64,000 nucleotides of DNA. Source: Geosiphon pyriformis uo1 (lineage: Eukaryota; Fungi; Glomeromycota). Shown piece after piece: positions 2,086-64,000 of this stretch. The notes beneath the pieces were generated by a model. It did no database searches and had not been told where the DNA came from. It worked only from the letters and a program-made list of their open reading frames with translations. The stretch covers positions 79,068 to 143,067 of the forward strand of contig JAAOMT010000516.1 of NCBI GenBank assembly GCA_016748015.1, read 5' to 3'. A program made the position numbers and the translations under genes. Every line of letters starts with the position of its first letter. The first letter of the stretch is position 1.

Positions 2086-3825
2086 AATATTGTTTTTAAA
2101 AACTTTATCTCTCTGTTTTAATATATGAAATAATAAACTAAAATAAAACGTTTCAATATTATTTTAACTTGGTCTTAGTATAATTTTTCTTATTTTCAAT
2201 TTACAAAATTAATAATTAATCTATTGAATAAATTAAGAAATTATTTAATTGCAAATTATCTTACATATTTTTAATAAATTTTATTCTGTTTTCTTATAAT
2301 TAAACAAATTATCAAAATTATGTACAGGATTTAATCTTTTTAAACATATGCTTTAAAAAACAAAGCACTGTATCGAGCGATTTTTCTATCTACAACTTAT
2401 AAATACTCCTTTTCAAAGTTTATTCTATAGTAAATAACTTGAAAAATATGAAAAAACGTAAAAGCATTTAAAAGTAGCCATTTATGTTCAACTTCTTTCA
2501 TCAAAAACCTTTATCCAAGAGGATTGAAAATTTATAAACAATTAGATGTTTTTTTGTTAATGATATTGGTTTAATACAAGTAGGGAACCATTTAATAATG
2601 CGCAATTTTTTCCCGGCAGAGACACCCTTTTTCTTGAGTGTATCTACCTTTTAATGTTCCTTTTTACTAAAATCTTTCAAGTTGTTATTTAATTAAATAG
2701 TAAATGAAAAATTTTTTTTTGTTATTTTAAGATGGTGTTTATTTGCTTTCATTTATGCATATCGTCATATTTACCAAATAAATAAAAACAAATATGATGT
2801 TTATCTTATGGAGATTCGAGTTTAATCTAAAATCCTATTTCTTTAACTCTGTATTCAAAACAACAAAAATTAAAATACAGTGTATCCCAACTATAGTACA
2901 AATTCTAATTTTTTCATATTTAGCCAAGCTTATTTGAGAAGTTCATTTAGGCTACTATTATTAAGATTCATGTTTTTATTAATAATCAAAAATTTTCCCA
3001 AAAAATTTATAGAGCTTTGAACTTTTTTATTTGTGAAGACTTTGTATAATTATCGCGTAAATATAATTGATTTATTTCCAAAAATAAATAAACAACTTTT
3101 TGTTTTATTCTTTTTCAGATTACTTTTTGTACAGTTTTATGAAATAAAAATTTAAATTATTGAAATGAATAATAATGAATTTAAACCTTCAGATATCAAA
3201 TAATAAAAGTGAAGGTTTCAAAATAAGTGTAAGTTTAAAAATTTGATTAATTCATATTCATTGATTTAGATAATAATAAAAGTGATTGCATGGCCAATTA
3301 ATTTAATTTAGAAATAATATTGTTAATGGTAGTTCTAATTGAATTAACCGAACAATGGTTACCTCAATACCAAGGCATCATCATCATAATATTAAATATT
3401 ACTAAAGATCCAATCTTTTTTCATAAATATGTTTTTTTAAAGGCTATTATGATATGGTATATTGTAAATAAAAAAATAGAAATTGACAGCTAACTCCTAA
3501 AGCTCTTTTATTAAATTATATCTTGTTAATTTATAGGATTTTTGAGACCAAAGGGTTCATCTTGGGTAGTAATAAATATAACTAAAATTTAAAAAAAACC
3601 GAAAATTCGGCTATTTAAATATTTCATGCTTTTCAAATATAGGCCTTGATCTCTTTGGCAAAATATTTGAGGGGACTAAAAATAATGGTGGGAATTTTAA
3701 AGACTCAGAATTAATTGATCAATTGATAAACTGCGGATTAACACCTCTGGATAAGTATCAGACCACGTGTGAATACCTTACATAAGGAAAAAAAATTCAT
3801 TCCCAAGATATATCAAAAGCTACTA

Positions 3826-5350
3826 ATGTCATCCGAACAACACTTTAACGCTTTATCCAATGATTTCGGGGATCTATTTGACTGTCAAAAGTTCTCTGAT
3901 GTTAGAATTATAGTTGACGAAGCACCTAATATCAGAAATTTTCATGCTCATTCTCAAATTTTAGCAGCAAGATCACCATATTTTGCTGTAGCGCTCTCTA
4001 GTAATTGGGTTAAAAGGGAAAATAATACCATTATATTCACTAATCCTAATATTTCACCTAAAATTTTTGAAATAACTCTCAGGTAAGGGATATGTTTGCT
4101 TCAAAGTATTTTGGCCGACATAAATTTAAATATTTTTATTTTCCTGCATAGATATATTTATTACGGCGAGATTTCCCTTAACGAAGATGGAGCACCTATT
4201 ATTTTAGAATTACTTATCGCCGCTGACGAGCTTATCCTAGAAAATATTATTGATCCTCTTGAAGACTATTTGATTGGACATCATTTAAAAGAGCTACAAG
4301 AAAATTTCGTCACTTGGCAGAAAACTTCATTTATGCATGATTCTTTCAAAAATTTACAGATTTTATGCACAGTAATAATGGCCAACAATCCAGCTATAGC
4401 CTTCAACTCGCAAGATTTTACCTCTCTTAGTTGAAAATGCTCTTTCTCAATTTTAACCCGGGATAATCTAAATATAGAAGAATCGAGGATATGGGAAAAG
4501 ATCGTGGAGTGGGGAGTTGCTAAATTGGATGACAATATTCAGACGAAAAAAGTTCTTGACTGGACGGATGAAAACTTTAACGCCTTTAAGGAATCCATTT
4601 TAAGACTACTACCTTTAATCCGCTTCTTTAACATATCTTCAGTTGACTATTATTACAAAGTAATACCATTTGCAAGAATCTTACCTGGAACTTTATATGA
4701 AGATCTTTTACATTATTATCTCGTATTGGGTAGTCATCAAGAGTCTGTAGACGCTCAGCCATTACGATCAAATTATCATTCAAAGCTTCTTCAATCGCAT
4801 AATATAAAACAGCTTGATCATTGGATTCAAGGCAAAGACGAAAATACTCCTTTTGAAGATCAACTTGGAAATGATTTTAAATTGTTACTTCGAGGCAGTC
4901 GAAACGGATTCACTCCAGCCGATTTTCATCGATTATGTGATAATAAAGGAGCAACAGTAAGCGTGATCAAAGTGAAAGGAACTGGTCATTTAATTGGCGG
5001 CTATAACCCACAATCCTGGCACTCTCGGGGTGGAAGATCAGATGGAGAAGGAAGTTTTATTTTTTCCCTTGGAGACGGCAAAGCTAAAAATGCTAAAATT
5101 TAGTAAATTTCTTCATGGATGTGGACCTTATGGTGGATCAAGACCTAATTTTGGAGAGAACAGGATTCGATTGTATGTAAGTCTTCTATTTTGTGGCAAT
5201 GATTTTAGAAAAAAGCCAGGGTGCTCTTGTCAAAATACAAGAGATTATGAGCATGCTATAATGTCTGGATCAGAAAATCAATGGATAAATTTCTTTGTTG
5301 AGGAGTATGAAGTTTTTCAAATCATAAAAAATAAATTCGCTTTTATTTAA
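3826..5350 (+). pseudogene. BTB/POZ-BACK-TLDc domain protein, frameshifted (pseudogene or homopolymer assembly errors)
   Basis: ATG 3826; GT-AG intron 4083-4151. BTB motifs SDVRIIV..FHAHSQILAARSPYF..ITLRYIYYG; BACK ILTRDNLNIEESRIWEKIVEWG..LLPLIRF; TLDc FKLLLRGSRNGFTPADFHRLCDNKGATV..IGGYNP..SFIFS..VEEYEVFQI. Apparent indels near 4432/4445 (giving a TGA) and at 5101. Confidence 0.85.
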
Positions 5351-6318: not shown

Positions 6319-8802
6319 TTATAAAAGGCTATCATCACTGACATCACCCACTTCTTGACCGATATTGTTTAACCCAGTGGAATCATCGAGAGAACTCGCT
6401 TGTTCAAACACATTACCATTTGACTGGTTAGGATCATTTAACTGAGTGGGATCATTGAGAGAACTCGCTTGTTCAAACATATTATCGTTTAACTGGGTAG
6501 CATCGCTGACATCACTCGCTTGTTGAACTGTACTACCGTCTAACTGAGTGGGGTCATTGAGTGAACTCGCTTGTTCAAACATATTATCGTTTAACTGGGT
6601 AGCATCGCTGACATCACTTGCTTGTTGAACTGTACTATCGTCTAAATTAGTGGGGTCATTGAGAGAACTCGCTTGTTCAAACATATTATCGTTTAACTGG
6701 GTAGTATCACTGAAATCACTCGCTTCTTGAACCATACTATCGTTATTTGAATCATCGGTAACATCAGCTGAAGCGATTTGTGGGGAATTGTTACTGGCAT
6801 TCGCAGTTTGTTTACACTTTGATTTGTTGATTGGCATATCCATCCATTTATTATTATCCAAATTCTTGGTTCCAAGCGCCTCTTTATCTCTAGCACTACA
6901 GTTCTACACAATGCAATTAATAAATTTTCAGAATAATCGTATTGTTCAAAGATTTTTATGACTAATCAAGAATTTATAGAACAAAACATACGGGATTTAC
7001 TGTGGGAAGACCCTTTTGACCTGGAGGGGGCCAGGAACACCGGTAAAGCTGTTTACCACCACCCATATCCAACTTATTAAACCCGTTAGCTTTTTCTCCA
7101 TTAAAATATTCTTCAAGAATAGGCACATATCCATGTTCAGGTCCGGGAGATTGAGTTATACGAAAGTTTGGTTTGGTGAAACGAAATATTTTGCCCGGAA
7201 ACAGCAAACTGACCAGTGTAGAACCATGCCAGTTAAGGAAATTTGGCGATCCGAACATGTATACAGCATGGATAACCTCTGGTCCAAAGATTTTGATGAA
7301 TTCCATAGCTGCTAAAGCAGCATAAACTAGATTTACCGATGTAAAAGAATTAGAGACCATGAAAATAAAAAATCGAAGATGGAGAATATTTGCAAATCTT
7401 TCTAAATTTTTACCCACCACCAGCTTTTCCACTTCCGATAAATGTAAATAATGGTGAACCTACAGTACTTTGTACCATACATTTTGCCGAGGCGGCTACT
7501 TTTGGCAAGAAACCTCGAAGTTCGTCTGACCACCCGGCATCAACTTTAGCATTTGGTAAACTTGCAGCTATCTGGTCACCTTGAGGATAGCTTTTCCCAA
7601 AGTTCGGCCTGAGAGGCACTAGATCATTACGCCTTCCATTCCAATCAGGTTCCTTTGACGAAAAATCGACGGTAAAATCTCGATCTCCTGTTTTCCGAAC
7701 TCTTGCTTTAAAATTTCATAGAAAATTTTTGGTCACAATCAGTAAATTACATTAGCAGAGCAGATGAGTATCAGAGAAAAAATAGAGTTATAAATTTTCA
7801 ATTTTTACCAGCATTTCCATTTTTATGATTCAAACATTGATTATTAGGAGGAATACATTGAGATTCTTCTAATTCATAAGCGACTTGAATAAATTTTTTA
7901 ATATCATTATCATTATTATTTATTAAGAGCATTCCATCCTTGTCTGTTCCAGCTGGAGGAGTTGCATAAGGATTTAGTGGCATATCACCCGGTGGATCAG
8001 ATAGCTTGCCACCACCTATAGATGGCAGAAAAGGGATACCTGGGGCTACTTTTTGGATTAATGGAGCGGCTTCTTCTATTACTAATGGAACGGCTTCTAG
8101 TATTGGCTCCAAAAAAGCCACTTTTTGTTCAGGTTTTGAGTCGGCCAGTTGGTTTGAAGAAGTGGTTGGTTCATCGGTAGCAATATTTGAGGTATCAATA
8201 GAGGAAAGTTTAGCATTTTCTTGGTTACCCGATTGGAGAGTGGAGAAATTGTCAGCTATATTAGAATTACTACTAAGATTGTCTAAACTGATTGATTCTG
8301 GGTTTTCTTGGCCACCCGATGGGATAGTGGAGAAATTGTCAGCTATATCAGAATTACTACTAAGATTGTCTAAACTGATTGGTTCTGGGTTTTCTTGGCC
8401 ACCTGATGGGATAGTGGAGAAATTGTCAGCTATATTAGAATTACTACTAAGATTGTCTAAACTGATTGGTTCTGGGTTTTCTTGGCCACCTGATGGGATA
8501 GTGGAGAAATTGTCAGCTATATCAGAATTACTACTAAGATTGTCTAAACTGGTTGATTCTGAGTTAAATGAATTGTTCAAGCTATCTGTTTCTGGAATAG
8601 GATTTCTCTTTATAATAATAATATTATTCTTCTTGTTTAACGGTGAAGCATGAGCAAAAAAACTCATGCATAATGTCAACAAAATTATTATTGCCAAAAT
8701 TTTTGATAAAATATCCCGCAAGGAGAATTTATTTAAAGGTGATTTGTTAGTTGTTGCTATTGATTTTCTATTTAGTGACTCAGATTGATCGGATGGACAC
8801 AT
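6319..8802 (-). CDS. Secreted Lipase_3-fold pseudoenzyme A with acidic tandem repeats at both ends (about 733 aa)
   Basis: Exons 8802-7809, 7705-7418, 7326-6992, 6903-6319; GT-AG introns in phases 1,1,0; frame consistent. Hydrophobic ILAIIILLTLCMSFFAHA then KR. Core motifs VDAGW, FTFIGSGKAG|VYAALAA, VYMFGSP. Same intron layout as the other three paralogs. Confidence 0.75.
6380..6745 (-). repeat. Coding tandem repeat, 51-bp (17-aa) unit arranged as a 102-bp higher-order repeat
   Basis: Alternating VQQASDVSDATQLNDNM / FEQASSLNDPTQLDGST in exon 4 of pseudo-lipase A. Confidence 0.9.
8210..8551 (-). repeat. Coding tandem repeat, 87-bp (29-aa) unit, about 4 copies
   Basis: SLDNLSSNS(D/N)IADNFSTIPSGGQENPE(P/S)I; gtctaaactg recurs at 8281, 8368, 8455 and 8542. 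Confidence 0.95.
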
Positions 8803-10519
8803 TTTTAGGTATAAAAATTTATGATGATGAAAATCGAAACTTTTCCCAGCGTGTGTGTGAGCCCATTTGTATGCCTTTTATAAAATATTCGACATTCTCC
8901 CTCATTAATACTTTTTTAATGTATGATCGATTTCCGTTTTGTCAACGCTATTTTAAGAATTTTCGGATATAAAATAAATAATAGAATAGTTTACTTTTAA
9001 TTTTAACTAGATTGTTAAAAAATTCAATAAAATCCCTTTAACTTTGACCGAATCTCAAAGAAAAATATATATACAAATTGGAAAAAATTCAAAATTCTTT
9101 ATGTCTGAAAAAGTAGATATTCGGAAAAATTGAAAATTATCGCTTATCACGGAAAATTGTGACGATGATGAATTTTGAAGTTCGGCAAAAAGGTTTTTAT
9201 CTATTTCTTTGAAAATTGTCCGTTTTTTTCAGAATAAAATTATTATTATATAATGATTGAAAGTAGAATTTCACATGGACGCTTTCAAATTTCGGAAGGA
9301 ACTCATATTTAACTAAGATTGATCCATTAATAAAAAAGGGAAAACTAAAATTTTCCAAGATTTGTTTTACATAATTTAAAAATTAATAGATATAGTTGTC
9401 AAAAAGTCTTTGAATGAATATGTCTTTCCGTTCGGAAAAAGTTGAAGTGAAAATGGGTTCCAAGAAATCTTTGAAAGAATACGTTTCTAAATCTTGGCAA
9501 GATAAAAAGTTCCCAGATGAAATAAATCACACTTCATAAAATAGATTAATCTTTCATGCCTTTATTTAGGAATTATTTTTGAAAATCATAGTTTTCCAGT
9601 AGAAAGTGAAAAAATTTGACCAAATAATTATTTCAACTTTACTTGTTGGTTATAAGAACGTGCCTGTAAATTAAGTACTTTTATACTCATATAAATTCCA
9701 ATAATATCTTTTAAAAATTTTAAAAGTTTTGTGAAATTAATTCTTAAAGAAGCTTTAAATTTATTAATTTAAAAATTATTTCTTAATAAAAGTACACAAA
9801 ATCTTTAAAAGAAATTTGAATATTCATATTTTTTTTTTTAGCTAATTTTTTTTACAAATAATTTATAGTAAAAATGTTTTGAAAAATATTTCTTTTCTCT
9901 TGATAGCTTAAATTCATTAATTTAAAATAATTTTTAGAAAAAAAATCTTTTCTATTTGTTGAATTAATAAAGTTTAGCATTTTTAGCATTTTATTTTATT
10001 TTATAAATAAGACAATTTAATTAAATTAATATTTGAATATTTACTAAAGGTACTTTTAAATATTTTTAGTTTTAATTAATTTTTATGTAATTGAAATTAT
10101 TTTTTTTAAAAAAATAGATAACAAACTTGAAATCTTTTACAAAGACTTATTTGATTGACTTTAAATAATTCAAATATTTAAGCTAACTCATAAAATTTAT
10201 ATGACCTGAAATTAACAATTTTTTTTAATTTTTGATATCTTGTTTAAATTTTTTTTCTTTGGTTATGATAGCTATTGAGAGTCTAATTGCAATACAAAAT
10301 ATTTGGTTTTTAAGACAGAAAGAAAAGAAAAGAAAAGAAAAGAAAAGGAAAGGAATAATTACCTTAATGGTAGTGACAATGTTCTTTGAAATAAAAACGA
10401 CATTTCAAACCCTTTTAACTTTTAATTAAAATTTAGCAACACATTTAACAGCAACAGCTAATTTTCACGTAAAAAAGATTTCTTTGTAGAAAATCTTTAT
10501 CAAGGATGTTTTATCCATC

Positions 10520-10690
10520 CTGAAAATACCTAGAGAAACCAAAGACTTGTAATATAATTTGAATTTGAAATTAATTAACTGCGCTTTTCTCTCATCAAAG
10601 TACTTAAAATGGGTTTTTAGGTAAAAAAATGATTTTCACACGGGTAACATTCTTCCTGACAATTACCAATTTTGGCTTATCATTTACAAT
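10520..10690 (+). pseudogene. Degraded protein kinase (TKL-type) fragment
   Basis: 10631-10654 encodes DFHTGNIL (catalytic loop of the HRDxHxGNIL type). After a frameshift comes ITNFGLS (DFG loop). An ETKD..LR remnant lies upstream. Confidence 0.45.
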
Positions 10691-11472
10691 TATTTGGTAT
10701 CTTGACAAATATCGTATCACAGTTTATCCTTATAAGATTGTGAATAAAATTGGTTCCTAGTCTTGAAAACAAATTTATATAGAGGTGATGATAAGCAAAT
10801 TAATTAATTAGAGTCAAAGTGAGAAATTGATAGGAAAGAAAGTTATAGATATTAAGATGAAATTTTTCAGTTGATTTTGACAAATCACCAAATACAACCA
10901 ATCCCAATATAGTTGCTTAGCTATCTGTGGTTAGCTGGAATTACCCGATATTTTGAAAAATATTCTTCACTTAATGCCGAACGTAATTGACCTGGAGTTT
11001 GTGATGATTTTTATGTAGTTGAATTTTAAAAGATTGGATTGATCAAAGTTCTCTAAATTTTTTTTCAAAAAAAAAACCAGTGTAATAACTAAGGGTTTAT
11101 GTTGAAATGTTAGATTGGTTCTTTTAAGTCAATATTTATTTTTCTTATTTGGAAAAAGAAATAAATAGTAAATAGTCAATAGAATCAATAATTATAACAA
11201 AGACTGAAAAGAGAACGCATAGGTAGGTAGGTATAGGATATTAGTCACATTTAGAAGGATCAAAGCTATCTGAGATAGGGATCAGTACTTCTTAGCTACT
11301 AAGTAGGTAGGTAGGTAGGTAGGTAGTTTAACTAAAAATTTATATTTTAACTTTTTGCTAAAAGATCATTAGATAATTTCGAATTATTAAATACCAAAAT
11401 AAAATTCAAGGTTTATATTTTTCCTTATTTCTTAAGCGAAAATTTCAATTTTTTTCTTCAATATTAATGTGG

Positions 11473-11473
<1 letters not shown>

Positions 11474-11513
<40 letters not shown>
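11474..11513 (+). repeat. (GAT)n microsatellite
   Basis: Perfect GAT run. Confidence 0.9.
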
Positions 11514-11753
11514 GTAAAGCCAAAAACTAAAAACGAAAATTAGAAATTAATTTAATTATGATCCATAAATATTTACAAAATTATGGGTTTTTAAATAGGT
11601 AAAGATGTTTTTGGTGAGTCAATAAATTTTTTAGGTGAGAAACTGTTTTTTCCCTTTTTCTTTTTGGGCTAATCTCTGAAAATAGTTAAAAAAATTAAAA
11701 TTCAAAAATCAAACTAAAAAGACGAGAAACTTATTTTTCATTAAAACGAAATT

Positions 11754-13337
11754 ATGCAAAGGATAGTATTTTATTCCATTTATTTAATTCTTATATTTCA
11801 AATTATTTTTCGATTAAGTCATGTTCAATTAAAAAATATTTTTTCTGACCACTTTTTAACTCAAAAATACAGTCAATATGGAAAATTTTCAATATCCATT
11901 AACAAAAATTTAGAATCTTTTCAATTCCCCTTTTCAGTCATAGCATCTCAAAATGATTCTTTTGTAAAAAGATCGTCACTTCAGTATCCTAAAAAAACGG
12001 CATACACCCTCAAACATCAAGAAGAAATCTTACAATTAATTGCGAAAGCTTTATTTGCTAATTTGGCTTACTGTTTTCCCTATAACGAAATTGGAATTTT
12101 GGTAAATCGGACCAAAATCATTGGTATTTTATATGATAGAATTATCTTTATAATTTTGCATTTTTGAAAATTGTTGAATTAAATTAATTTTCCAGTTCGA
12201 AAACTTTCTCTCTTAATATAAAAGCTGATGTAGCAGCAGACACGGGATCTCATACAATCGTTGCATATTTTAAAGGCCCTCATTTAACAAAATCAGAATG
12301 GAGAAGCAGAACAAGCAAACTTGTATCGTATAGCGTGCAAGGGATGCAAACAAACGCATTAGTTCAAGTGGATGAAGAATGGTTTGTGGATGTGTCAATT
12401 ATGATGGATGCTTTAGTAGAAAAAATTAATTATAACCTCAAGAATAAAGAATATAAGAAAATCATTTTTTGTGGACACGGTGTTGGTGGTGGTAATTAAT
12501 CTTTAAAATGGGTTGGGTTGGATTGGGTTGAGAGGGGTGGAGTGGGATCGGATGCAGGTTGTGATGCATAGAGACTTGGGATTTTTTGTTCTTGAAAATT
12601 TTGTCTTTAAAATTTTGTCTTGAATTCTTCTGATAAAACATTTTATTAATGCTTAATAATAATATATAATTTTTTACATAATTCAAAAAAAACCAATAGC
12701 ATATGCAGCAATAGCAGGTCTATCGTTTGCAATCATCAATCTTCTCCAGCCATTTTCATTATCATTGATCGGCATATCATATTCATCTATTGATCTTTCA
12801 ATTTATACTTTCGGTGAACCAAGAGTCGGAAACATAATGTTTGCTAGAATGATGAATGAATTTGTAAAAGTTACAAGAATAACTCACAAAAATGATTACG
12901 TTCCGCATTTTCCTCAAATTAAAAATGGCCTATCAATAATGCAACATCATGAAGATGAAATATGGATTGGACCGGCTGAGTGTGATTGCGATCCAGATAC
13001 AGTTCTTTTTGAAGGTGATCAAGCAATTTGGAAATGTGGAAAATATAGAGGAAGATGGGAAAGCAAATTACCTTCAATTCAATCATTAGTTGAGAAAAAG
13101 TTTTGGATACCTAACGATGATTTGGCCAATGAAAATGAGGTTATATTGAAAAAAAATCTTGGTCTAAAAAGTTTTTTTTTTTTTACAAATTTATAAGACA
13201 ACTAAATAAAAAATTTTGAAACCTGAAACTTTTAGGAATGTAACGCTGGACAATCTATCACAGGGTCAGATGAGGATCTATTACATTTTGGTCCTTATTT
13301 TAGTATTACGATGAACGATTGTAGTCCATTTCAATGA
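11754..13337 (+). CDS. Secreted Lipase_3-fold pseudoenzyme B (about 392 aa)
   Basis: Exons 11754-12123, 12225-12491, 12700-13139, 13236-13337 (phases 1,1,0; open). N-terminal hydrophobic stretch, KR, ANLAYC, IVAYFKG, VDEEW, IIFCGHGVGG|AYAAIAG, YTFGEPRVGN, RITHKNDYVPHFP, ECNAG, HFGPYF. Confidence 0.85.
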
Positions 13338-14049
13338 GGTATTCGAGCAAGAAAAAAATATTTCACCATATATTCATGTTCAAAATGCCCTGGAATATCA
13401 TTTTTAAAAACTTTTTAATATATATTAATTTTTTGTTTATGAAAATTTTTTTTATTTCTTTTTTTACCCTTAAACTTTTAACAAATCTAGGGAATCCGAG
13501 TTCTTTAAAAAAAGACTTTAAAATTTAAAGTAAAACAGAGTTCATAAGATAAAATTAGGGCTTTGCATTATGTAAACTTCTACACTAAAAATTTTCTTTC
13601 AACATGATTATTTCCATTGGTGATGTCATTTATGCCTAAATGGGAATTTTTATTATTTTTATATAAATACAGTATTTTTATTCTATACGAAGCGAGTAGG
13701 AATAAACCGTTTGAGCATTGTTCAACTTGAGTTTCGAATTCTTTTGTAAGAATATCCACAGATTTAATTAAAATTGATTATTTTTATTATTTTTAAAAAA
13801 TGCTTTATTAAAAATTTCTCTCACATTTAAAAATGTTTTTTTCTTTATAAAGTCAGTCATTTAAATTCAATTTTTTTTTTCTTTAAGCTCCTTTAACTAA
13901 TTTCTATCAGTATAAAGAATATTAAATTTCCTATCATACTCTTCCTTCCTTCCTTCATCACTATCACTCATATTAACGATTAATTGCACTTAACTAATTA
14001 CTAATTTTTCAACTAACAATAAAATAACCATTTTCCGGATTTTTAAAAT

Positions 14050-16170
14050 GATTATTGCAATCTCAATACACACACCTATGAATTATCCGGTCAATCACAA
14101 TTATGCAATGGGTCAAATAAAGAATTGTGCAACATGATCATTTCCGTGGGTAAACCGAGTACAAAAAATCTTTTCATTTATCAACTGCATTGAATACAAG
14201 CGACTCTGGTACATGTATTTGAAATGAAATCAAATGTTTTAAAGGGTCAAATTTGTTTGAAAGAGTAAATCTGCAAAATTATATAATTATCGAACTTCCC
14301 CAATCCCATTTCAAATTGCTTGTTCGAATCTGGAAAAACTATATTCTTTATCCCGTTCAAACACAATTCGTAGGAGATTGTTGCTTTTTGACCAATTCCT
14401 AAAAAAATTTATTATTAAATTTCACCAACACACATATTGTAAAATAATTCGAATTTAGAATTTTTTGAAAATGCTATTTCATGAAACCAAAAATATTTAT
14501 TGGTCCATCATAGACTATTTAGTATGGCATAAATATTGTGGTGAAATCAAATTTTGACTGAGGAGCAATTACTTTGGATTTTTTTACGATAAAACTTAAA
14601 TTAATTCACGCCATTCAGAATCCTTATACTTGAAAAATTCATCATTGAAAAACCCATCAAATGAGCGACAGTAAGAGTCATTTGTAGAGGATGCAAATAA
14701 TTGTTCCTGGTCATTGGAAATTTCAAATTCAGTAATTTAAAGTTACAAATTTAAGAAATCTACAGTCTTCAAAGTCAAGAGCTGCAAAAAGAGTGTCATC
14801 GGTTTTAATTTGTGTTGAGAAGCATGATCATAATTATATCTATGATTAAAATTATTAAGCTCAGGAAAGGCTTTGAACAAAAACAGATTAATTTTAATTA
14901 ATATCCATCAAAAAATATCTAAACGTCCGCTAATTAGTGATTTAATTTTAAACAAGAATTAATATCACGTTTAAAATTCATAAACACAAATTAAAAGTTA
15001 TTTCAATAAAACTTTCGCTACGTATAATACAACTTATCACATTATTTTCTCCTCATTTATGAATATGGCCTCGTATCCAACTAAATGAAATATGCTACCG
15101 ATGAATACATATCCACCATCTATTGAAGGTTTGTTTATATCAAGAGCAAATAGACCATCATTGAAATGGAACAAATTTGGGCAATTGCGATCTGGGAGTG
15201 GAATGAGGTAGAAGAATCGGCCATCCATATTTATAAATATTGAATAAAAGTTTTTGAATTTTGTTCAAAATTGAAAGTAACAAAATGAGGAAAATGAACC
15301 AATATAAAGAATTAAATAACTTACTCGTCAAATTGATTTTTTCGTGTCTTCTTTAAACTTGAAAAAGATTTTCTGAACATATTCTTTCAAATTCAAACGA
15401 TTCTCGGGAGAAATATCTAATACAATTCTCAATTTTAACGGTTGATCTAGGAATTTTGATGGTATACTTGGTTAATAAACATCGTTGATATTTTATCAAG
15501 ATTGTCGGATTTCAGCCACTTGCCCTTTATCCTCACCCAAAACCAAATAATCGTTAACAAGAATATCACGCATAAATTTTGTGCCTTTACCATCAATGGT
15601 AAAGTGTCATCGGCCTTCTAACTCAACTTGACCTAAAAATTTGTTGCCTGACTGATACTCTAGTCGGAATTGAGTTTTTGCATGGAATATTTTTACCCAT
15701 GGGCTGAATGGAAAACATTCTTTCCGGTCGATTTTTATGAGATAAATTTTTTTCATTAAACATAAAAAACTTGAGAATTTCAGTTGAATGGAATCTCGGC
15801 AGTTTTGTGAGCATCTCGTTTAAAGTTTCACTAAAGTTTTTGTATCCCTTAGTAATTTAATTCCCCTCGAATCCTCTACTACCACCTCAGGTTTTGTGGC
15901 AATTAGGAATTTCGAAACAATCAATTACCCGTTTATTTTCAAAAATTGCATCCTTTTATTGGTCAATTTCCTTTAAACCCCGAAATTTTTTTGTTTGGCT
16001 ATCGGTCTTTTCGTATTTCGGATCTCGCATCCCTGTTTTCCTCGGAAGGTATTTTTATTTGTTCTTTTACAAAAGTGACGATTCACGTCCCATCAGGATG
16101 CTCGAGACTTTCTTAGAATTTGATAGGAATTGGATAATTTTTGGGTGAGTGTTTCATTTATCAGGCCATA
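14050..16170 (-). pseudogene. Degraded multi-exon coding region of unknown family
   Basis: More GC-rich than its flanks. Long protein-like stretches broken by stops (LGQVELEGR*HFTIDGKGTKFMRDILVNDYLVLGEDKGQVAEI; PLKLRIVLDISPENRLNLKEYVQKIFF; ORF 15037-15228). GTAAG donor near 15324. Confidence 0.4.
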
Positions 16171-19100
16171 AATTTTAGCTGTGCTATCTTTCTCTACAAA
16201 GCAAATATCTTTGGTATTTTTAATTAAAAAAATATGCTATTTCGGAAATCAGATTCTTATATAAATGCTATAATTTTATATAAAAAGAGACTCGATTACT
16301 CTTGCTCAATATCTATTTTATTGAGTTTGGGAAACTAATCAGATAGTAGATTAATTTGATATCTGTTATATATGCTAGAAATAATTCGAAGTAAGTTATA
16401 CATGCCACAGCTGTTTTGGTGGTATATATGTCTATTAACCTTTTAGGTTCATTAACTGTGTTCAACTGGATTGAGTTTTTTCAACATAACTTGATCGCAA
16501 ATAGTCATAGGCAGCTGTCAGATTAGGTCAAAGTAAATTCAAGTTTAAACGTTTTTAGGTGTTAAATTATTCTAAAGGAATATCAGAAACTTGTTAGTCT
16601 TGAATTATTATTTATTAATCACAGTTATGTTTGGATATCTCATTTAATTAAACTATAATCTTATTTAATCAAACCCATTCACAAATTTCTGAAAAATTAA
16701 AATAATATGTGCATATTTAATAATTTTAGCTTTAATTAAACCAAATAAAAGTTTGAAATTATTTTTAATTTTGAATTCGACTTTTTTATTTGATGAAAAT
16801 AATTTTCAAATAAATTTTGTTCCCTTTACTTTAATAATAATTTATTTAAATTAAGAAAGTGATAATGTATGAATTTTTAATTTAATATTTTATTATTATT
16901 TCAAAATGGACTTTGAATTCATTGTTGGTCAACTTTATCAAATAATTTAATATGAGAAATTTTTTTTAATAATTCTGGATATTAAGATGAATAAGCTTCC
17001 AAGTATTCTTAAATAAAAAAAAATTATTCTTTTAAAATAAATGAGATATAAATATTAGAGTACAGTATATTCTATATTAAATAAATAATATTTTTAAAAT
17101 ATTAACTTTTTATAAATTGAATCTAATATTTAAAATGTAATTTTAAATATATCCACTTACATAAAAAATTTAAAATAGCTATTTACTTAGAAATTGAAAG
17201 TTAAAGACTATAAATCTATTAATATATAATAAATTAATTTAAGAAAATAAAAGTATCATATTAATGCATTTATAAAAATAAATTAAATTTTAATTAAATT
17301 AAAAATTACATTAACATAGAAACTTTTTTTTAATTGTATAAACAAATCTGTTGGAAAATCAATCTTTTAAGTAGTTTTTTAACTTGAAAAAACTTTCACA
17401 TGTTATAAAAGTAAATAGGATATGCTAATAGATCTATGTTCACAATGGGTTGTCAAATGAATTAATCATCTTTTACCCATAAAATGTTATTAAAAGCTGA
17501 GATAAAATAAAAATACCGACAAGTTTCTTGATAAGTTTTTTTGCCATTTAATATAAAATATAAACAAGAATTTTAATCCAAATCAGCAATTAAAGAAAAA
17601 GAAAATTTTTTATCTAATATTTTTTAAATATTAAGAAAAGTTTTGGAATGCATTAATATAATTTACATACAAATGGTTTTTATTAATTATCGAATTTTTA
17701 AAAATTATAAATAAAAATTTGAAAAACTTTAATTTTAAAAAAACTTCAAGTTTTGAATTATGAAATAAAAATATTACTATAAAAAATGCAATGAAGATAA
17801 CAATTCAATTTTTTTTTTAAATTAAAATTTTTTTATCATAATTTTGAATATTTAAATCAAGAATTTATTTTGTAAATAATCAACATATATATTTTGTGAA
17901 GCGCCCAAGACACATGTACTAATTCTAGTAAAAAAATCTCTCAATGTTCCTTATGAGCTATCTTTTTATAAATTTACTAAAGAATAATTGAATAAAGTGA
18001 TCTTAAAATTCAATCATACACTTTATATATCTTATCCTTTATGAATTTTACAGAAAAATTTTTAGCAGCACATAAAACGCAAATCGTTTTGTTTTTGGTG
18101 TTCTATAGAATAACAGCAAGACAATGGTGAAATTCTTTGCCGTTTTTTGCATAATATCAAGGATGAATGACTCAATTAATTAATTTGTTTAAATATGTTT
18201 CACTAGAAAAATAACATAAATACGAACTCTGCCTTTTACAATACTACTTTCTAAGTGAAAGCTTGTAAAAATAGTGGCCTTTAAACATAGCCTTTATTAT
18301 AATAATATATTCACGTTTTATCCTTTATCCGCACAAACCACGGAAAACCTTTGAAATTAAACGAACTCATTCAGAAACTCATTATCGCAACGAGTGTCCA
18401 ATATGTCAAGAGATTATTCGAAACAATGAATGAAATCCATGCTATTAACTTTAGATTTATCTGCTAGAGAAAGGCCAAAGCATTTACCACATTTTTCTGG
18501 TTTGAGTCTCTCCTTTTCCGAATTATGACAGTGCTCAAGTTTTTTCAATATAGCCGACCAAAAGCAAGCCCTTATTCAATCAAATTGCCTTTAATCTCTC
18601 ATAAATTACTAAGTAACGATAAAATTGGAGACTTGTCCAGAAAGAACAAGAGCAGCAAGTTCCACGGAGTGATTACAAACTAAATTCTTAACACTAGCTG
18701 AAGCAAATTTCACACCTACAACCATATTATTTTAGGCCCTTTCAACATCGCTATTTTTCGCATCGAAATGCACAAGAAAAGCACATAGCTATCTCCTCAA
18801 TGCCTCCAAATGTGTAATTTCCAGTACCTCCGCCCCCATTGGCATTCTTGAGACTTCTCAGGTGACTCCGAGCTTTTTTGTCATCTCTGTAGGTTGAAAT
18901 CCAGTCTTCAAAAACATTCTTATGATTATTGAAAATCAAAGTAGTACGATTAATTGAGCCTTGATACCTAATTTCTCATGGTCTAGTTTTTTTTATTTTG
19001 ACAGTTTCTTTGTCGGCATTAACTTTGAGCGAACTTCTTTCCGAAGAAAAAATAAATTCTTACTAGCAAAAATTAAAAAGATTTAGACATTTCAAAACAT

Positions 19101-20354
19101 ACTTTTTCTTAAAGAGCCTAATTAGATAACTATTTTAGCTTATAAGAAAATCAACAAAAACGAAATAAGCAAGCACGGTTTGTTTTAATGCTTCAAAACT
19201 GATTAATGGTTGTGTTAAAAATGATAATTGACCGCAAGCTAATAATTGGTTCTTGTAAGGAGTGACTAGAGTTTTGGTTTACTATGCAAGCTCATATAAC
19301 GTTTCTATATGAATATTTTTCAGTCCAGTTCATCTTTTTCCTCACGTTAAATGTTTTTGTCTGAAAAATAAGCTTCTGGCTCAATCCATTACCCAAGAAT
19401 TAGAAAAATGAGGAAAATTTTAATTTTCACTTTAAAACAATTAAACCAAGACCAGGAAGCTGACTGGGAATGAAAAGAAATCGAACAAGCTTGCCTTACC
19501 TATAAAAAGTCTTAACAACGCAACAATTGGCTATCCCAAAAGTTAGCAAGTTTATGGTAGATGAAAAAATTATAGATAGTTGGGGGCTATAGAAGTTATT
19601 GAGAGTTAAACTTTAGATGCTTTCTATATCAGTATTCCTCGAATCTAAGTTATGGAGCACACCAATTTAATTAATATGATAATCGAAACTTGGAGCGTCA
19701 GATTCTGCTGAGCAATGCAGTTTCTACTACACTCTTGTCCAAAAGAGATGGGGTGAAAAATATTTTAGGTTTTCAGTTTAAAATGGGGCACTATAAATAA
19801 TACTGTTTTTTTAACGATTGAAGCATCACCCAATGTTCATTAGCACAATAGAAGATATGATGATTTAGTTACATTTTTGGGAGCAGGGAGTCCATGAAGC
19901 TACGAAATATAATCTTTGACAAAGGATAATTTATTATATTATTCCAAGACTTGGAAAAAATCGTAATATAAAGCGCAAAAGAGGAAATAGCAAGCATAAG
20001 AATCTCACAACTAATAATTCTTGTATAATCGGTCACTATATTCAAAGAGTAAATTAGCGGAAATGGAAATAAAAGTTCCTTTATGAACAATTTCAAGGAA
20101 TCTGGTCGAGCATGCATCTTACCTCAATTCAACAAAGAAAGCGTTGCATGGGCCATTTTTGCACACCATCTTGTATTAGAAGAAAGAACCACAAATGAAA
20201 TATCAAATTTATACTAGAATTGTTTATCAAAATACTAAACATAGATTTAAATTAAAAATTTGGGAATATATGATCTTATATCATCTATCAATTTCCATAT
20301 CGTAAAATTTATCTCGAAATAACCGTTAAATCACCTCTTTCGATCATTTGGTCT

Positions 20355-21841
20355 TTATTCTTTGAACATTGAATCTTTCATGGTAGAACAATTCATCTGA
20401 ATTCCAAAATATGGCCCTATATGAGAGGCTTGTGAAAGCGGCGAATCTATCAGTGTAGTTCCAGCATGACAATTCTTAATAATAATAGAATTTTATAAAC
20501 AGAAAAGTAACGTTTTTAATTAATCAGTTTTCTTTAAGAATTTTAAACTTGAAAATTTTTTAGTTCTAGAAACCTAAAGCTTACCTGATTTTCATCAATA
20601 AAAAAACCATCTTCACCTCTCGCTTCAGGCAAACATTTATACAATATATAATCCGCCATATCATTAACCTCTCCACAATTACAATTTGCATTTGAAATCC
20701 AATATTCGGTCTTCGGGTGTTGATATTTTTCAGCTTTTGTTGGCATATGAGGGAACCAATCATTATTATTTACTACTCGAAGATGTTCCGGGAACATAGC
20801 TGAAATATGATTTGCAAAAGCTCGGTCACCTGGACGAGGAGCACCATACGTTACCAAGTTTGTGTATGGACGCATAGTGGGATGTCTTCTTTGAAACGAA
20901 AGTCCTGCTAAAATTGCGTATACTAAAAAAAATTGTTTTAGGAAAGTGAAAAACATTAAAAACCAAAATTGAAGCTTTTTTGCCCTCACTTCTTTAGTCC
21001 ATTTACTTACCTCCACCCTCCCCATGTCCAGTGAACACTACTTGATAAAGCACATCATAATTATTCATGGCTGAATCAATCTTAACATTGATTTCTGCTT
21101 CACGATATAGATAATTTCGAAACCATTCTGAGTCAACCCCAGCTCGAATATTGTTATTTGTGTCAGGATACAAACTCAAATGGTTTATTCTTCGCCGTCT
21201 ATCAGTTGGAGAACCTTTTTTACCCTTTATGAAGACCATCAATCGGTGAAGATGTTTCGTAATCACTTTTTCCTTAATCCCGACTGGATAAGTTGTTCAA
21301 ATACCCATGATTTAAAAATTCAATGTATAGGTGCAAGATATTCAGATATTTTAATCTATTTAACCTCACATGTGATCTCCTGAGGAAAGTATGTTTTTTC
21401 AGCTGAGAGACAATAAGCTTCTCTTGAATAACTCGCCATTTCTTTCAAATAGTCCAAGATCGCAACGTCATTCACTGGTACTTTGCTTTCTTCATCTTCA
21501 ATTTGGGTCGCCACTAACGAGATGCGTTTGAAATGTTTTTTTGTAACCTTCAATGCCTTGAAATCTACCAAAGGATCTTTTATCTTAATCAAATATTTTT
21601 GATAATTGTAATGAATTTTATGGTTTGAATAGGCCAAATAGTTTACTTCATTTGGACTTTTAAAAAGAAATCTTTCGGCACTTAATAAATTTTTGAAAAT
21701 CAGAAAATGGAATCCCCAAATAATGAATCCCCAAAAAATTATCCTAAAATGTGGTAAAATGTGTTTTTCGCTATATACTATGACCAGTTCTCGTCCAGCG
21801 GCTGATACAAAGCAACATAAAGTTCTTTTAAATCTATTCAT
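20355..21841 (-). CDS. Lipase_3-fold pseudoenzyme C (about 400 aa), signal peptide or anchor
   Basis: Exons 21841-21370, 21283-21011, 20922-20585, 20474-20355 (phases 1,1,0; open). Motifs SREAYC, MVFIKG, VDSEW, VVFTGHGEGG|VYAILAG, VTYGAPRPGD, RVVNNNDWFPHMP, NCHAG, HIGPYFG. Start codon choice is uncertain. Confidence 0.85.
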
Positions 21842-22366
21842 GATTGAATAATGAAGAATTCTTTTAAAATTTTCATTTTTATTAAACTCCCAAATGCTTA
21901 TGATAATCAAAGTTTGAATCTCTCAAAACAGACCTTTGCTCATATTATAGTGTTCTTTTCTATCAGTTACAGAAAAGGTAAATCACAAGAGTCAGATTCC
22001 AAACAAAAAAAAATATTGGCACAAAGGGATAAATATTTAATCATACATGAAGATTGACCTCAACAATGACCAAAAAGCTTATACCAACAATTTTTGGCAA
22101 CGAATGCAATTTTTTCATTTTATTCAGATGGATGATTCCCAGAAACATTTTAGCGCTGAATGATCTGCTGTGGTTCAATAAAAGCAATATTGAAGAAATC
22201 TTTCTTTGAAATGTGCAAATTCCCATCCTCTATATATGTTCCCAAAAGTTTATAATAAATAGCCTTCGAAATTCATATCTACAAGATGCTCATCTCATTG
22301 GCCCGTAACATGGTTCGTCATCGGAAATAAATTTCTTTTCTATGAATATTTAAAATGGAATTCATT

Positions 22367-23801
22367 TTAAAATAATGACCATTCCACTGGACCGCAATCA
22401 CCCATTGTCACTCCAAAATAAGGTCCATCATGAGGATCAGGTTGAGAACTCCCTGAATCGGTTGTACCTGCATTACATTCCTATTTGAGGGATTTAAAAA
22501 TGAATATAATGGAAATGACTGTCCAAAGAAAAAGATTCTCTCACCAAATTTTCCCCACTTGTTAAGTTACGGGATGTTCGATAACCAGGACATTCCCAAA
22601 GTAGATTTCCGTCTGGCATCGGTTTCAAAGTTTGATTTATATCTGATGACTTACAGTCACAGTCTGGTCTTGCTATCCAATATTCATACTCGTGATGTTG
22701 GAATTCAAAATTTGAAAGAAAATCTCGTGGAATGAAGTCGTTAGTATGTGTCACCCGATAAATAAAGATTTCTCGATTCATAGTAGATGCAAATGCTGAC
22801 AACCCAACACGTGGTTGTCCAAATGTAACTATCGATACAAGTATCCTTTGATTTGGTGTATTCGATTGATAGGTTCTTAGGTTTTTGTAAATTGCTGGGG
22901 TAGCCAGAACCGCGTATGCTTCAAATTAAGGTATGGATTAGATTTGAAAAATAACTTTCAGGAATCCAGGCAAAAAAATAGGAATGATTCAAGATCGTGA
23001 TCCTATACCTCCCCCAATTCCATGACCAATGGAATATATCTTTGTTACACCAAAAGTTCTGCCGTTCGGAACCTCAGGTTTGGTGGATAAAAACCTTTCG
23101 ATCCTGGAAATTAATTCCGGTAAAAATTCGTTCACGTCCGCATTCCATACAGCATCAACGAATGTATCTTTTCCATGAAGGCTATTTGCGTATCTTGATA
23201 ATCGAATCTCCCGTTTTTCCCATTGATTTCTTGTTAATCTATTTCCCTTAAATATTACGAAAATGTTTTTAGTCAAGGGTTCCTGCAAAACATTGACTAA
23301 GACGAAGAAAATTTATGAGAGTGATTAGAATCATGTGAATCATGAATTTATTTGATAGACCCAAAGTGAATAAATCATAAAACCTTCAACATCTTTTAAT
23401 TTCACTTCTTGATCAGTATCATCACCACAATATGCCATATTAGCATATTTCGCCATTTTATGTAAAAAATTAATTTTAGATGGTGTCCAATTTCGGATTT
23501 TCTTTGGATATGCTCTTTCCTTTTTCCTAAGATAATTTCGTCCTACTATACTTCTTGTAAGACTGTCCCTTGTTAAATAAGTTTTGGAAACAAGGCTTGG
23601 ATCTTGAAGGCTTGTGCATTCTTTATGTTGTGGTTGATTGAGCGAAAATATTTTTATGCCGGATGTTTTTGATACATCTTTTCCATCTAACGAAATTTCT
23701 TTTACTCCAGAAACCCATGTCAAATATAGGATAAGAATGAAACTTGTACTTAGGAAAGCACAAGGCTTCCAAACGAAAGTTTGGCTATTCATTTTTCCCA
23801 T
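22367..23801 (-). CDS. Secreted Lipase_3-fold pseudoenzyme D (about 397 aa)
   Basis: Exons 23801-23384, 23296-23009, 22918-22545, 22480-22367 (phases 1,1,0; open). Motifs FILILYLTWVSG, ANMAYC, FVIFKG, VDAVW, YSIGHGIGG|AYAVLA, VTFGQPRVG, RVTHTNDFIPR, ECNAG, HDGPYFG. Confidence 0.85.
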
Positions 23802-33004: not shown

Positions 33005-34072
33005 TCATGGTTTATTGTTCTGAATATTATTTCCCATGGTACCTTTACCATAACCACTATTTCCATGCCTTGCTCTTTCTCGTTTTGAGGCAGAATTTGA
33101 ATTATCAATTTTCATGTTATTTTTTCCAACACCACCGCCACCACCACCTATCCCTCTTCGAATAACTCCACTTCTGTCCAATCGTTTCAAAATTTTGTCC
33201 TCCACCAACTGACTTTTTAACTCATCAACAATGGTTTTCAAGCCCAAATTTTCTTCTTTCAAATCTTTCATTTGTCTTCCTAAAAGTCCATTTTCAGCTG
33301 TCAGAGCACTTATTCGTGAATTTAATTCTTGTATCTGTGAGCTCATCTCTTGAGTTTGTTTATGTTTTTTTGCACGATATTTTGCCGAAGCAACTTTATT
33401 TCTTTCTCGCCTTTCGTGAAGGGTGAGTGGTGATAGAGGATCCAAAGGATCGTCTAAAGCTCCTGGTGATGATACTGTTGGAGATGAAATAGATTTCGCA
33501 GCGTATTGATAAAGTAAAGGTGATGGCGGTTGTTGTTGTTGGGTAGGAGTTATAGCGGAATTTGGAGCGGATGATGAAGTACTTGGGGATAATAATTGTA
33601 ATATTTGTAGTTGTGGATTGGAATGACGAGAATTAAAGGAGTTGTTATTGCTGCTGCTACTATTATTATTATTGCTATTGTTATTGTTATTGTTATTGTT
33701 ATTGCTGGTATTGTTGGTCAAAGAGGTTGGTTCTGGAATTTTTAAATGTTGTTGTAAATAATGAACGGAATCGAAAAATTCGTTGGGAGTTTGAGAAGGA
33801 GTCGAAATTTGTGGTTTTATTCGCGGAAGAGATGAGGTGGAATTTGGAAGTGAAAGTGAATTTAGAATTGGTAAAGGGTGTAAATTATTTCCTTCGAATG
33901 ATAATAATTCCTGTACACGAAGTCTTCTACCATGATTTGGTGGTGAATTGCCTCCGCTAAAATCTGAATTTTCTGGAGATGAAATGGCCACATCGATTGT
34001 TACCAATGGAGCTGGTGGTGACCTTGGCGAAGAATGATATGAGCTAGTGGTAGTATAAGTTGTTGATGTCAT
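33005..34072 (-). CDS. bZIP transcription factor (355 aa, intronless)
   Basis: Basic region ERRERNKVASAKYRAKK (N-x7-R) followed by a leucine zipper IQELNSRISALTAENGLLGRQMKDLKEENLGLKTIVDEL. N-terminus rich in S/P/N/Q; poly-Gly in the tail. Confidence 0.92.
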   Translation of the reverse strand: MTSTTYTTTSSYHSSPRSPPAPLVTIDVAISSPENSDFSGGNSPPNHGRRLRVQELLSFEGNNLHPLPILNSLSLPNSTSSLPRIKPQISTPSQTPNEFFDSVHYLQQHLKIPEPTSLTNNTSNNNNNNNNNSNNNNSSSSNNNSFNSRHSNPQLQILQLLSPSTSSSAPNSAITPTQQQQPPSPLLYQYAAKSISSPTVSSPGALDDPLDPLSPLTLHERRERNKVASAKYRAKKHKQTQEMSSQIQELNSRISALTAENGLLGRQMKDLKEENLGLKTIVDELKSQLVEDKILKRLDRSGVIRRGIGGGGGGVGKNNMKIDNSNSASKRERARHGNSGYGKGTMGNNIQNNKP

Positions 34073-47100: not shown

Positions 47101-47881
47101 TCTTGATATAAACTAATTAATTTTTACAATACCTAAGTAAAAACTACTTAATTAAATTACTTTTAACAATTAATTATTGTTTTTAAGCATTACTAAAATC
47201 AATAATGTTTTTAAAAAACAAAAAATATTAGTTTTTATTTTGTTAATTTAATTTTTGTAATTAAATAATTCAATTAGTTAAAATTACATGTAAAAAAAAC
47301 AACAATTATTTATTAATCTACATTAACTTTAACAAACATATTATTTTTATTATTATTTAAAATGTTCATTACAACTAAAATAAAATTTAACATTATAATT
47401 AACAAAATTAATAAAAATATTAAAAAAATTAGAAAAAGCTAATGTTTTATTTATTACTTTTTTAACTATTAAAAAAAATACTTTTATAAAGTGTATTTAA
47501 TTGTTTTTATTATTAAAAATCTTTCAAAATAATTATAATTATAATAATTATATTGTTATAATTAATATATATAAATATTTTTTGTTTTTAATAATGTGAA
47601 TTTATCAAATTTTATATTGTTTTATTTTTAAAATTTAAATTATAAATTTGCTTTATATATATTTTATATATATTTTTTATTTGAACTTAAGTTTATAAAT
47701 ACTTATTTATTTTTTTAAACAAAAAAATACTTAATGCTTTAATTTTATTAAAGTAATTGACAAATATTTATTTATTTTTAATATGTTTATATATATAATT
47801 TTTGAATTATATTTTTATAAAATAAAACAAATTAATTATTAATTTAAAAGCTGTAAAACCAAAAAAATTATTTTAAATATA

Positions 47882-49882: not shown

Positions 49883-51584
49883 TATCTTATAAAGCAATAA
49901 TTTTTTAAATTAATAAAAATTATTTTTACATTATTTTTTATTATTAAAACTAACCAATAAGCAAGTAAAGTTTTAATAATTTCAAAAAACTTAAAATACA
50001 CAACACTATATTATTACAAACTAACAGATTTTAACTTAATACCAAATACTTTAATAAAAATATTATACAATAAAAGTAAAAACAAAAACAAAAAACACAA
50101 AATATTTTGCGATCTTAAAAATAGTAAAAAAATTTAACAAGCTTAATATTAATAATTACAATTAGAAAAACTTTATACAAAAAAGTTTTATATTGTTTTC
50201 AGTAATTAATTTTAAATCAATAAAACTATGTAAAAATTAAAATATAGACTTGAAAATAAACTAACTTGACTTTAATAGTTTTATTAAACATTAAAATACA
50301 AATTATATATTCAAAAAACTTTTAATAACTTGTAATTATTTTTAAATATTATTAAAACTAATAGTATTTTTAAAAAGCAAAAAAAAAATATTTTATTTTA
50401 TTTTGTTGGTCTAATTTTTAAAATTAAAAAATTAATTAATTGATTTTATATAAAAATATAATTTATTATGTTTTTAGAATTGGTAAAAATTAACTAAAAT
50501 TTAATATATAATAAATAGACAAAAGTTACTAAACACTTTATGTTTTTATTATTTAAAATAATATAAATAACAAAAATAAATACAAAAAATTTATTTATAA
50601 AAAATATGTTAAAAATATAATTGCTATTGTTTACTTTTTATTTTTATAGATTTACATGAAAATTTACAGGAATTTAATGATCTTTAAACATTTAAAATTC
50701 AAAAAATAGAATTAACTGATTTAAAACATATAGAATTTTATTTTTAAAAATAAAATAAAATATAAAAAACATAATATATAAATAAACTAATATTATTTAA
50801 TATGTATTCAAAAATAATAATTTTTTTTACTTAATAAAAAAACTTAAAAATATATCAAAAAATACAGCGAAAGAAATACAAAAAGAATTAGTCTTAATTA
50901 ATTTTATATTAAATAAAACTTATTTTTAAAATACAGTTAAAAATCTTTATTAATTAAAATACAACAAAAAAATCGACTTAAATAATATATTAAATATTTT
51001 AATTAAACTATAAAAAAATAATAAAACTCTTTTTTTCATAGATTTCTTGTTTACAACAAAAATCAAAAATAATTAAAAAAAAAGTTTATTTTCTATTATA
51101 CTATTTTTTTTAATATAAACTTTTTTATAACTATAAAACTGACTGATTCTTTAATTAGAAGTTTAACTATTGAGAAAACTGGTATAAAAAACCGTTTTGA
51201 CATTAAAAAAAGTAAAACATACATATTTATACTTTAAAAAATTTGAACAAAAATACCAAAAAGCTTACAACTATTAAATTAAAGGTTGTAAACTTATTGG
51301 CAAATTCTTTGGTCATAAATGTGCTTAAAAATAATAAAAAATTTATGTGCTAATATTAAGATAATAAAGTAGAAAATAAAGAAAATAATATTAATAATAT
51401 AAAAAACATAATAATAAAAAAACCAGTTTTGCTAATTTAAATAATTTAAATAAAGATAAAATATGAATAAACCCACCTTACAAAATATTTGTATTCAGTT
51501 TTATAATTTGGAATAATTATCCAAAAAATTGTTTTTTATTAAAGTAAATAATAAAAAAGTTCTTGATTTTTTTTCTTCTAAATT

Positions 51585-60070: not shown

Positions 60071-60199
60071 ATCATAAAATTTAATAATTATTTATTGAAA
60101 AAATACAGTTTACATAATTAAAACTAATATTAATAAGCATTTATAAAATGCCAAAATATATATAAAATTTTATTATATATTCTTTTAATAAGCACAACT

Positions 60200-63960: not shown

Positions 63961-64000
63961 ATTGAATGAATTTTTTTGCAATTGGGGGGTTTTTTTTTTT

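Follow-up and report, generated by a model that had tools for sequence, protein, structure and literature searches.

A Geosiphon pyriformis family of Lipase_3-fold proteins without the nucleophilic serine: candidate non-hydrolytic binding proteins

Introduction

What is a lipase fold kept for once its nucleophile has been lost? The question is raised by four genes (A to D) clustered at positions 6,319-23,801 of a 64-kb window of the Geosiphon pyriformis assembly GCA_016748015.1, contig JAAOMT010000516.1 (the window is the whole stretch of DNA analyzed, and all positions refer to it). A preliminary description presented them as four intact, secreted class-3 lipase-fold genes lacking the catalytic serine. 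Our reading, to which we give a probability of roughly one half, is that B, C and D encode G. pyriformis-specific, non-hydrolytic binding proteins of the Lipase_3 fold, which would hold a lipid or glycolipid in the pocket and make their contacts through a variable surface.

A gene cluster without the catalytic serine

As modeled from the window sequence, each gene has four exons, no internal stops and introns that all run from GT to AG, and the intron phases (1,1,0), at homologous places, are common to A, B, C and D; the frames and splice sites are thus as intact as first described. Pairwise identity among B, C and D is 27-31%, and the similarity of A to these three is marginal. The cluster of four intact genes stands, but a fifth, broken copy with the remnant motifs RFTHGNDHV and CD*PD had been overlooked, and it points to birth and death of copies inside the cluster.

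Gene A: 6319..8802, minus strand, 733 aa; exons 8802-7809, 7705-7418, 7326-6992, 6903-6319
Gene B: 11754..13337, plus strand, 392 aa; exons 11754-12123, 12225-12491, 12700-13139, 13236-13337
Gene C: 20355..21841, minus strand, 400 aa; exons 21841-21370, 21283-21011, 20922-20585, 20474-20355
Gene D: 22367..23801, minus strand, 397 aa; exons 23801-23384, 23296-23009, 22918-22545, 22480-22367
Broken fifth family copy: ~14000..14480 (approximate limits), minus strand; stops and frameshifts, E 2.5e-4 with the family hidden Markov model (HMM)

The Ser nucleophile of the G-H-S-x-G-G elbow is absent from all four genes, with Gly in its place; on re-reading, the four Gly codons lie where the preliminary description had put them and have the codons it gave (the slash marks the elbow intron):

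Gene A elbow codon: 7428..7430, minus strand; Gly424, GGA; GSGKAG/VYA
Gene B elbow codon: 12479..12481, plus strand; Gly209, GGT; GHGVGG/AYA
Gene C elbow codon: 21021..21023, minus strand; Gly245, GGG; GHGEGG/VYA; present in a spliced contig
Gene D elbow codon: 23019..23021, minus strand; Gly232, GGA; GHGIGG/AYA

Contigs from an independent sequencing run of unrecorded library type (X1), which covers gene C and not gene D, skip exactly the three introns predicted for C (20474/20585, 20922/21011 and 21283/21370). Hence, gene C is transcribed and its elbow reads GHGEGGVYA, so that the transcript-level check proposed for the exons came out for C with Gly, and neither Ser nor Cys, at the elbow. 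One low-depth contig of this run has a 2-nt gap at 20644, which is possibly an error. Creation of a Ser by splicing was rejected, as the Gly codon is set back from the exon edge by about 9 nt and the C junction is seen in the spliced contigs. Likewise rejected was an intron 1 of gene B at 12101/12196, which breaks the frame; the in-frame junction 12123/12225 agrees with the paralog P0006 and with the NCBI acceptor.

The existing NCBI models differ from ours. G9A89_006689 (696 aa) fuses D and C, with elbow junctions identical to those given here, G9A89_006688 (gene B; exon 3 100% identical to P0001) is mis-spliced just past the elbow, and a 688-aa gene is annotated at the locus of A. Among the G. 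pyriformis gene models, many with a "multi-domain" Lipase_3 layout (e.g., P0045-P0061) are probably fused neighbors of the same kind as D and C.

Active-site remodeling on a conserved lipase fold

Exon 3 of B, C and D matches PF01764 at 38.9-44 bits (gathering cut-off 22), and the corresponding domains of the database protein P0045 reach 68.9 bits for C and 54.1 for D. An AlphaFold (AF2) model of the D domain (P0045:101-386, from a 132-row alignment) has a predicted local distance difference test score (pLDDT) of 88.6 and a predicted template-modeling score (pTM) of 0.90. With Foldseek it matches the Thermomyces lipase 1TIB at E 1.7e-13, and its superposition on the Rhizomucor miehei lipase 3TGL, a check that had been proposed at the outset, gives a VIA Z of 27.0 with a root-mean-square deviation of 2.5 Å over 237 residues, the EDS1 family following well below at Z 16-18. 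The lipase fold claimed for four genes is thus backed by Pfam and the D model for B, C and D, whereas A is tied to them by the family HMM, by BLAST and by its VDAGW motif.

Gene B: oxyanion position Pro142, elbow Gly209, Asp278, His376
Gene C: oxyanion position Lys179, elbow Gly245, Asp303, His379
Gene D: oxyanion position Asn158, elbow Gly232, Asp296, His377

The catalytic Asp and His are both kept in B, C and D; the oxyanion-hole Ser/Thr of F-R-G-S/T is absent from all three, and VDxxW replaces HxGF in all four genes. In lipase chemistry, the acyl-enzyme route needs both the nucleophile and the oxyanion Ser/Thr. With both gone, this route would be closed, and the further loss at the oxyanion position strengthens the non-hydrolytic reading that had been drawn from the elbow; B, C and D would accordingly lack hydrolytic activity, as judged from their residues.

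To see how far this extends, we put the Rhizomucor ligand-contact residues (listed in PMC9266812) by motif on a 132-row family alignment. The Ser144 position is occupied by Gly in 106 rows, Ala in 13 and Ser in 7, and the oxyanion Ser82 position most often by Pro (46), then Lys (15) and Arg (14). His108 has become Asp and Phe111 mostly Trp (W or F in 115/132). Asp203 is present in all 132 rows and His257 in 105; the pocket residues Tyr28 (110/132), Pro177 (130/132) and Pro209 (97/132) are kept, as is His143, and the remaining pocket positions are still hydrophobic. The pocket residues and His257 are much better conserved than the surface, and five Cys columns are nearly invariant (120-131 of 132).

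The family thus has in common with the fungal class-3 lipases (3TGL, 1TIB and the Aspergillus feruloyl esterase A) the fold, the GHxxGG elbow frame, the GxPRxG, RVTxxND.VP and HxxxEYW motifs, the C-terminal His, the disulfide-type Cys and the layout of signal, pro-segment and KR, the mucoralean prepro-lipases appearing likewise to have a KR-ended pro-segment. It differs from them in the change of the elbow Ser to Gly, of Ser82 to Pro, Lys, Arg and others and of HxGF to DxxW, in an extra CxC insert, and in numbering some 200 or more paralogs in one species, with diversifying selection.

Extent and origin of the family

A profile built from the third exons of B, C and D had 258 matches at E <= 1e-10 among 1.84 billion representatives; together with a word-based search, these gave at least 197 family domains in 173 entries. 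The elbow residue is Gly in 160 of these domains, Ala in 15, Ser in 10, Arg in 4 and Asp in 3. The catalytic Asp is found in 188 of the 197, and the His in 139 of the 167 aligned domains, its replacement in about one-sixth of aligned members being Asn (14) or others. The F[RK]G[ST] oxyanion motif occurs in 5/197 family domains versus 10/14 outgroup domains.

All 44 matches of the word-based search are from G. pyriformis, as are all strong matches of a further search and each of the 23 family members whose names were retrieved. Among the best 150 matches, seven proteins were identified as coming from outside Geosiphon, all of them ordinary GHS lipases, and GHS stands in all but one of the non-Geosiphon matches inspected. 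Hence, among the matches listed and named, the family has been seen only in G. pyriformis, within the thinly sampled Archaeosporales. A Logan contig from outside Geosiphon (P0194) codes for a Lipase_3 protein with GHGIGG, a canonical HKGF and no CxC insert, apparently an independent Ser-to-Gly change. P0187 and P0188 (G. pyriformis G9A89_009262 and 009271) form a divergent subfamily with the elbow NGYGIAS, P0187 keeping HNGF.

In the tree, the family is a single clade against the outgroups (Shimodaira-Hasegawa-like approximate likelihood-ratio support 97) with a star-like radiation; B, C and D fall inside it, and the marks of membership, namely VDxxW and the phase-1 elbow intron, are found in all four genes. 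These results bear out the proposal that the nucleophile was lost in the ancestor of a large family. The proposed Ser>Gly change needs refining: the elbow is not fixed, with Ala, Ser, Arg and Asp also present, and gene A is a separate case that lacks the whole triad. Once catalysis is lost, the strained turn of the elbow also favors Gly. Arg or Asp elbows are seen in P0075, P0134 and P0090 and in P0048_2, P0140 and P0101; two of those with Asp, P0048_2 and P0140, cluster with gene C.

The ten Ser-elbow members are dispersed among relatives with Gly or Ala. Five of their codons are AGT/AGC, a single step away from Gly; TCT also occurs, as does TCA, the latter within an Ala clade, and the F[RK]G[ST] motif is absent from all ten. 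The idea that they represent an ancestral clade kept active was rejected on these codon types, on the missing motif and by the approximately unbiased (AU) test (p 7e-111 with the elbow column removed); grouping three nested Ser-elbow members alone with the outgroups was also rejected (AU p 4e-60). Taken together, the scatter, the codons and the missing motif suggest that Ser has probably come back on several occasions, at a site remodeled beforehand, and such copies need not be active lipases; P0061_3, a Ser copy with a basal position, may be ancestral.

Selection in the subfamily of gene B

Selection was analyzed in the 13 genes of the subfamily of B, with pairwise omega (dN/dS) by the NG86 method and the core defined as sites showing conservation in family members that fall outside the clade of B. 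Omega is 0.35-1.09 overall, 0.04-0.33 in the core and 0.5-1.7 at variable sites; the comparison of B with its nearest paralog gives 0.90, 0.19 and 1.21 in the same order. Site models were fitted with in-house GY94 code that reproduces the IQ-TREE M0 likelihood. M2a is favored over M1a by twice the log-likelihood difference (2dL) of 66, with about 10% of sites at an omega of 3.8, and M8 over M8a by 57; the 182 strictly ungapped columns give 47 (F3x4) and 36 (F61) for M2a against M1a. These statistics use naive empirical Bayes and branch lengths scaled from M0, with gene conversion and multi-nucleotide changes uncontrolled. The positively selected sites are 165, 178, 189, 193, 194 and 197 in gene B numbering, those from 178 to 197 lying on or just past the long helix next after VDxxW (H88-110 in the D model). 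No variation is seen in the subfamily at the pocket and lid Trp, the Asp or the His.

In this subfamily, the core (omega about 0.1-0.3) is under purifying selection, and 8-10% of sites, most of them on a single helix away from the pocket, are under positive selection. Pure pseudogene drift is rejected by the low core omega. The suggested dN/dS check thus returned core values well below 1, and the maintenance by selection that had been supposed finds support in them and in the rejection of M1a in favor of M2a.

Predicted export

An N-terminal hydrophobic segment, often behind a basic n-region, is present in 27 of the 29 genomic first exons of fetched family loci, and KR stands just ahead of the domain in many members. 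Gene B has a hydrophobic N-terminus and KR at 72-73, and gene D a predicted signal peptide. The hydrophobic stretch of C is marginal (KD13 1.8); it is the sole one at its N-terminus, contains a 15-nt tandem duplication (21704-21739) and follows a start codon that is itself predicted. Many relatives resemble signal anchors. The call, made from hydropathy, disulfide-type Cys and KR sites and not with SignalP, suggests a family of secreted or type II-anchored prepro-proteins; the secretion originally claimed is favored by these features but qualified by the marginal stretch of C and the anchor-like relatives.

Gene A and the surroundings of the cluster

Gene A encodes a predicted signal peptide, N-terminal 29-aa repeats, a diverged lipase-like domain and C-terminal acidic repeats.

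Tandem repeats, gene A exon 1: 8216..8565, minus strand; four 87-nt (29-aa) Ser/Asn-rich units, 95% matches
Tandem repeats, gene A exon 4: 6439..6743, minus strand; three 102-nt (34-aa) acidic units, 93% matches

Searched exon by exon, A has no Pfam match above cut-off; a "UK virulence determinant" match in exon 1 (21 bits, below cut-off) was dismissed as a low-complexity artefact. The family HMM matches exon 3 at E 3e-7 (Z=1000) and exon 2 at E 0.017, local BLAST against family members gives E 6e-11, and Atlas features assign exon 3 to Lipase_3 at 0.90 and exon 2 to none; exon 2 folded alone, as a single exon, has a pLDDT of 42. The VDxxW-type motif is kept as VDAGW, Phe occupies the catalytic Asp position and the catalytic His is missing. 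These features point to a derived and far more diverged family member in which no residue of the triad is left and repeat stalks have been added; it is probably a protein of the surface or adhesion type.

Elsewhere in the window:

BTB-TLDc gene: 3742-5350, plus strand, adjoining the cluster
bZIP transcription factor open reading frame (ORF): 33005-34072, minus strand, 355 aa
Very AT-rich region (GC 10-25%) with few long ORFs: 45000-64000

BTB-TLDc, BTB-BACK and Sel1 genes also adjoin family arrays at four other loci (L003, L005, L009 and L011).

What the serine-less proteins may do

A conserved hydrophobic pocket joined to a diversifying outer helix is best fitted by binding proteins. We propose that a signal peptide or signal anchor would take the protein into the secretory pathway, many members carrying a pro-segment ended by a dibasic KR site. 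The fold and its hydrophobic, remodeled pocket would be kept, the acyl-enzyme could not form, and a lipid or glycolipid would sit in the old pocket, bound without cleavage, the fast-changing outer surface adjusting how the protein meets partner or antagonistic microbes at the surface of hyphae or bladders. The lipid nature of the ligand and a role at the Nostoc or microbial interface are suggested by this picture. Arbuscular mycorrhizal fungi, which have no cytosolic fatty acid synthase, show responses to specific fatty acids (PMC9620820), and Nostoc is a partner of G. pyriformis (PMC11134847); together, these facts make lipid capture or partner sensing plausible. That several hundred non-catalytic receptors or binders under positive selection recognize or capture Nostoc lipids or surface molecules is a bolder proposition, offered tentatively.

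Precedents exist in the neuroligins, neurotactin, glutactin and the dipteran yolk proteins, which are non-catalytic alpha/beta-hydrolases (PMC3531081). These are extracellular hydrolase folds that have lost the nucleophile and serve recognition or binding, as we read the Geosiphon family; they differ in belonging to small, cholinesterase-like or pancreatic-lipase-like animal families, and the likeness is one of analogy only. The neuroligins too have Gly at the elbow.

Several observations weigh against binding of a lipid in the pocket. The positively selected sites all lie outside the listed pocket residues, which fits protein-protein or decoy roles equally. The retained Asp (188/197) and His (139/167 aligned) also fit nucleophile-free catalysis, hundreds of copies would be unnecessary for bulk lipid capture, and the evidence of expression comes from gene C, in the single run X1.

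The first of these observations leads to a possible, if rather doubtful, alternative, in which the family is a variable surface or decoy repertoire: a disulfide-bonded scaffold with a vestigial pocket that binds proteins or forms a coat, its partners being lipase inhibitors from microbes, effectors from mycoparasites or endobacteria, or surface proteins of Nostoc. The clustering of positive selection on the helix after VDxxW, off the pocket, speaks for it, as do the star-like radiation with copies born and lost, and gene A, with its repeat stalks and without Asp and His. So does the use for protein contacts of the Lipase_3-related fold (Z 16-18) of the plant immune proteins EDS1, PAD4 and SAG101, structural neighbors of the D model that employ it without hydrolysis, as proposed for the Geosiphon family. 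However, a vestigial pocket sits poorly with pocket residues and a His257 far more conserved than the surface, and with the invariance of the pocket and lid Trp, Asp and His in the subfamily of B. The plant proteins are intracellular, of few copies and equipped with an EP domain, whereas the Geosiphon proteins look exported and branch with the fungal lipases; B, C and D have no Pfam match to the EP domain and end just past the lipase domain. EDS1 and PAD4 keep the catalytic triad.

An unlikely alternative makes the proteins nucleophile-free enzymes, with the His-Asp pair as general base of a decarboxylase, lyase or water-activating hydrolase. It draws on the retention of Asp in 132/132 and His in 105/132 rows, on the family-wide change of HxGF to DxxW, which could be a new active site, and on the precedent of tomato MKS1, with Ala at the elbow (PMC3531081). 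MKS1 resembles the family in combining a hydrolase fold, a small non-nucleophilic elbow residue and a retained His, but it belongs to the hydroxynitrile lyase subfamily and is a demonstrated decarboxylase, whereas any activity of the Geosiphon proteins is hypothetical. Against it, a residue needed for catalysis would not be expected to be replaced in about one-sixth of aligned members, as the His is; G, A, S, R and D are all accepted at the elbow, the oxyanion position is often Pro, and non-catalytic members frequently retain a His, whose presence is no marker of activity (PMC3531081).

Finally, a gene of slight usefulness may have expanded by largely neutral birth and death, leaving most copies without specific function. 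This reading has the overall omega between recent paralogs (0.44-1.09; 0.90 for B and its nearest paralog), the broken copy and a genome of 64% repeats (PMC9453076) in its favor, but it is very improbable and largely refuted for the core, given the low core omega (about 0.1-0.3, and 0.19 for that same pair, with the core defined outside the clade), the rejection of M1a in favor of M2a, the splicing of C, and frames, introns and Cys pairs intact across paralogs only 27-31% identical.

Implications

Non-catalytic alpha/beta-hydrolases as such are already known; in the searchable literature we found no description of the serine loss or of a species-confined radiation of some 200 or more exported, serine-less class-3 lipases. 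Fused or elbow-mis-spliced gene models hide the loss. Taken at face value, the number of Lipase_3 domains in G. pyriformis suggests a lipolytic arsenal, most of which would not be serine hydrolases. Among fungi, a set of at least about 200 predicted exported pseudo-lipases that conserve the pocket while the surface diversifies would be unusual. They offer testable candidates for how a fatty-acid auxotroph gains lipid from its cyanobacterial partner and how that partner is recognized; if the bolder proposition, with recognition or capture of Nostoc molecules, is true, the only known endosymbiosis between a fungus and a cyanobacterium would gain in them its first candidate system for partner recognition or lipid transfer.

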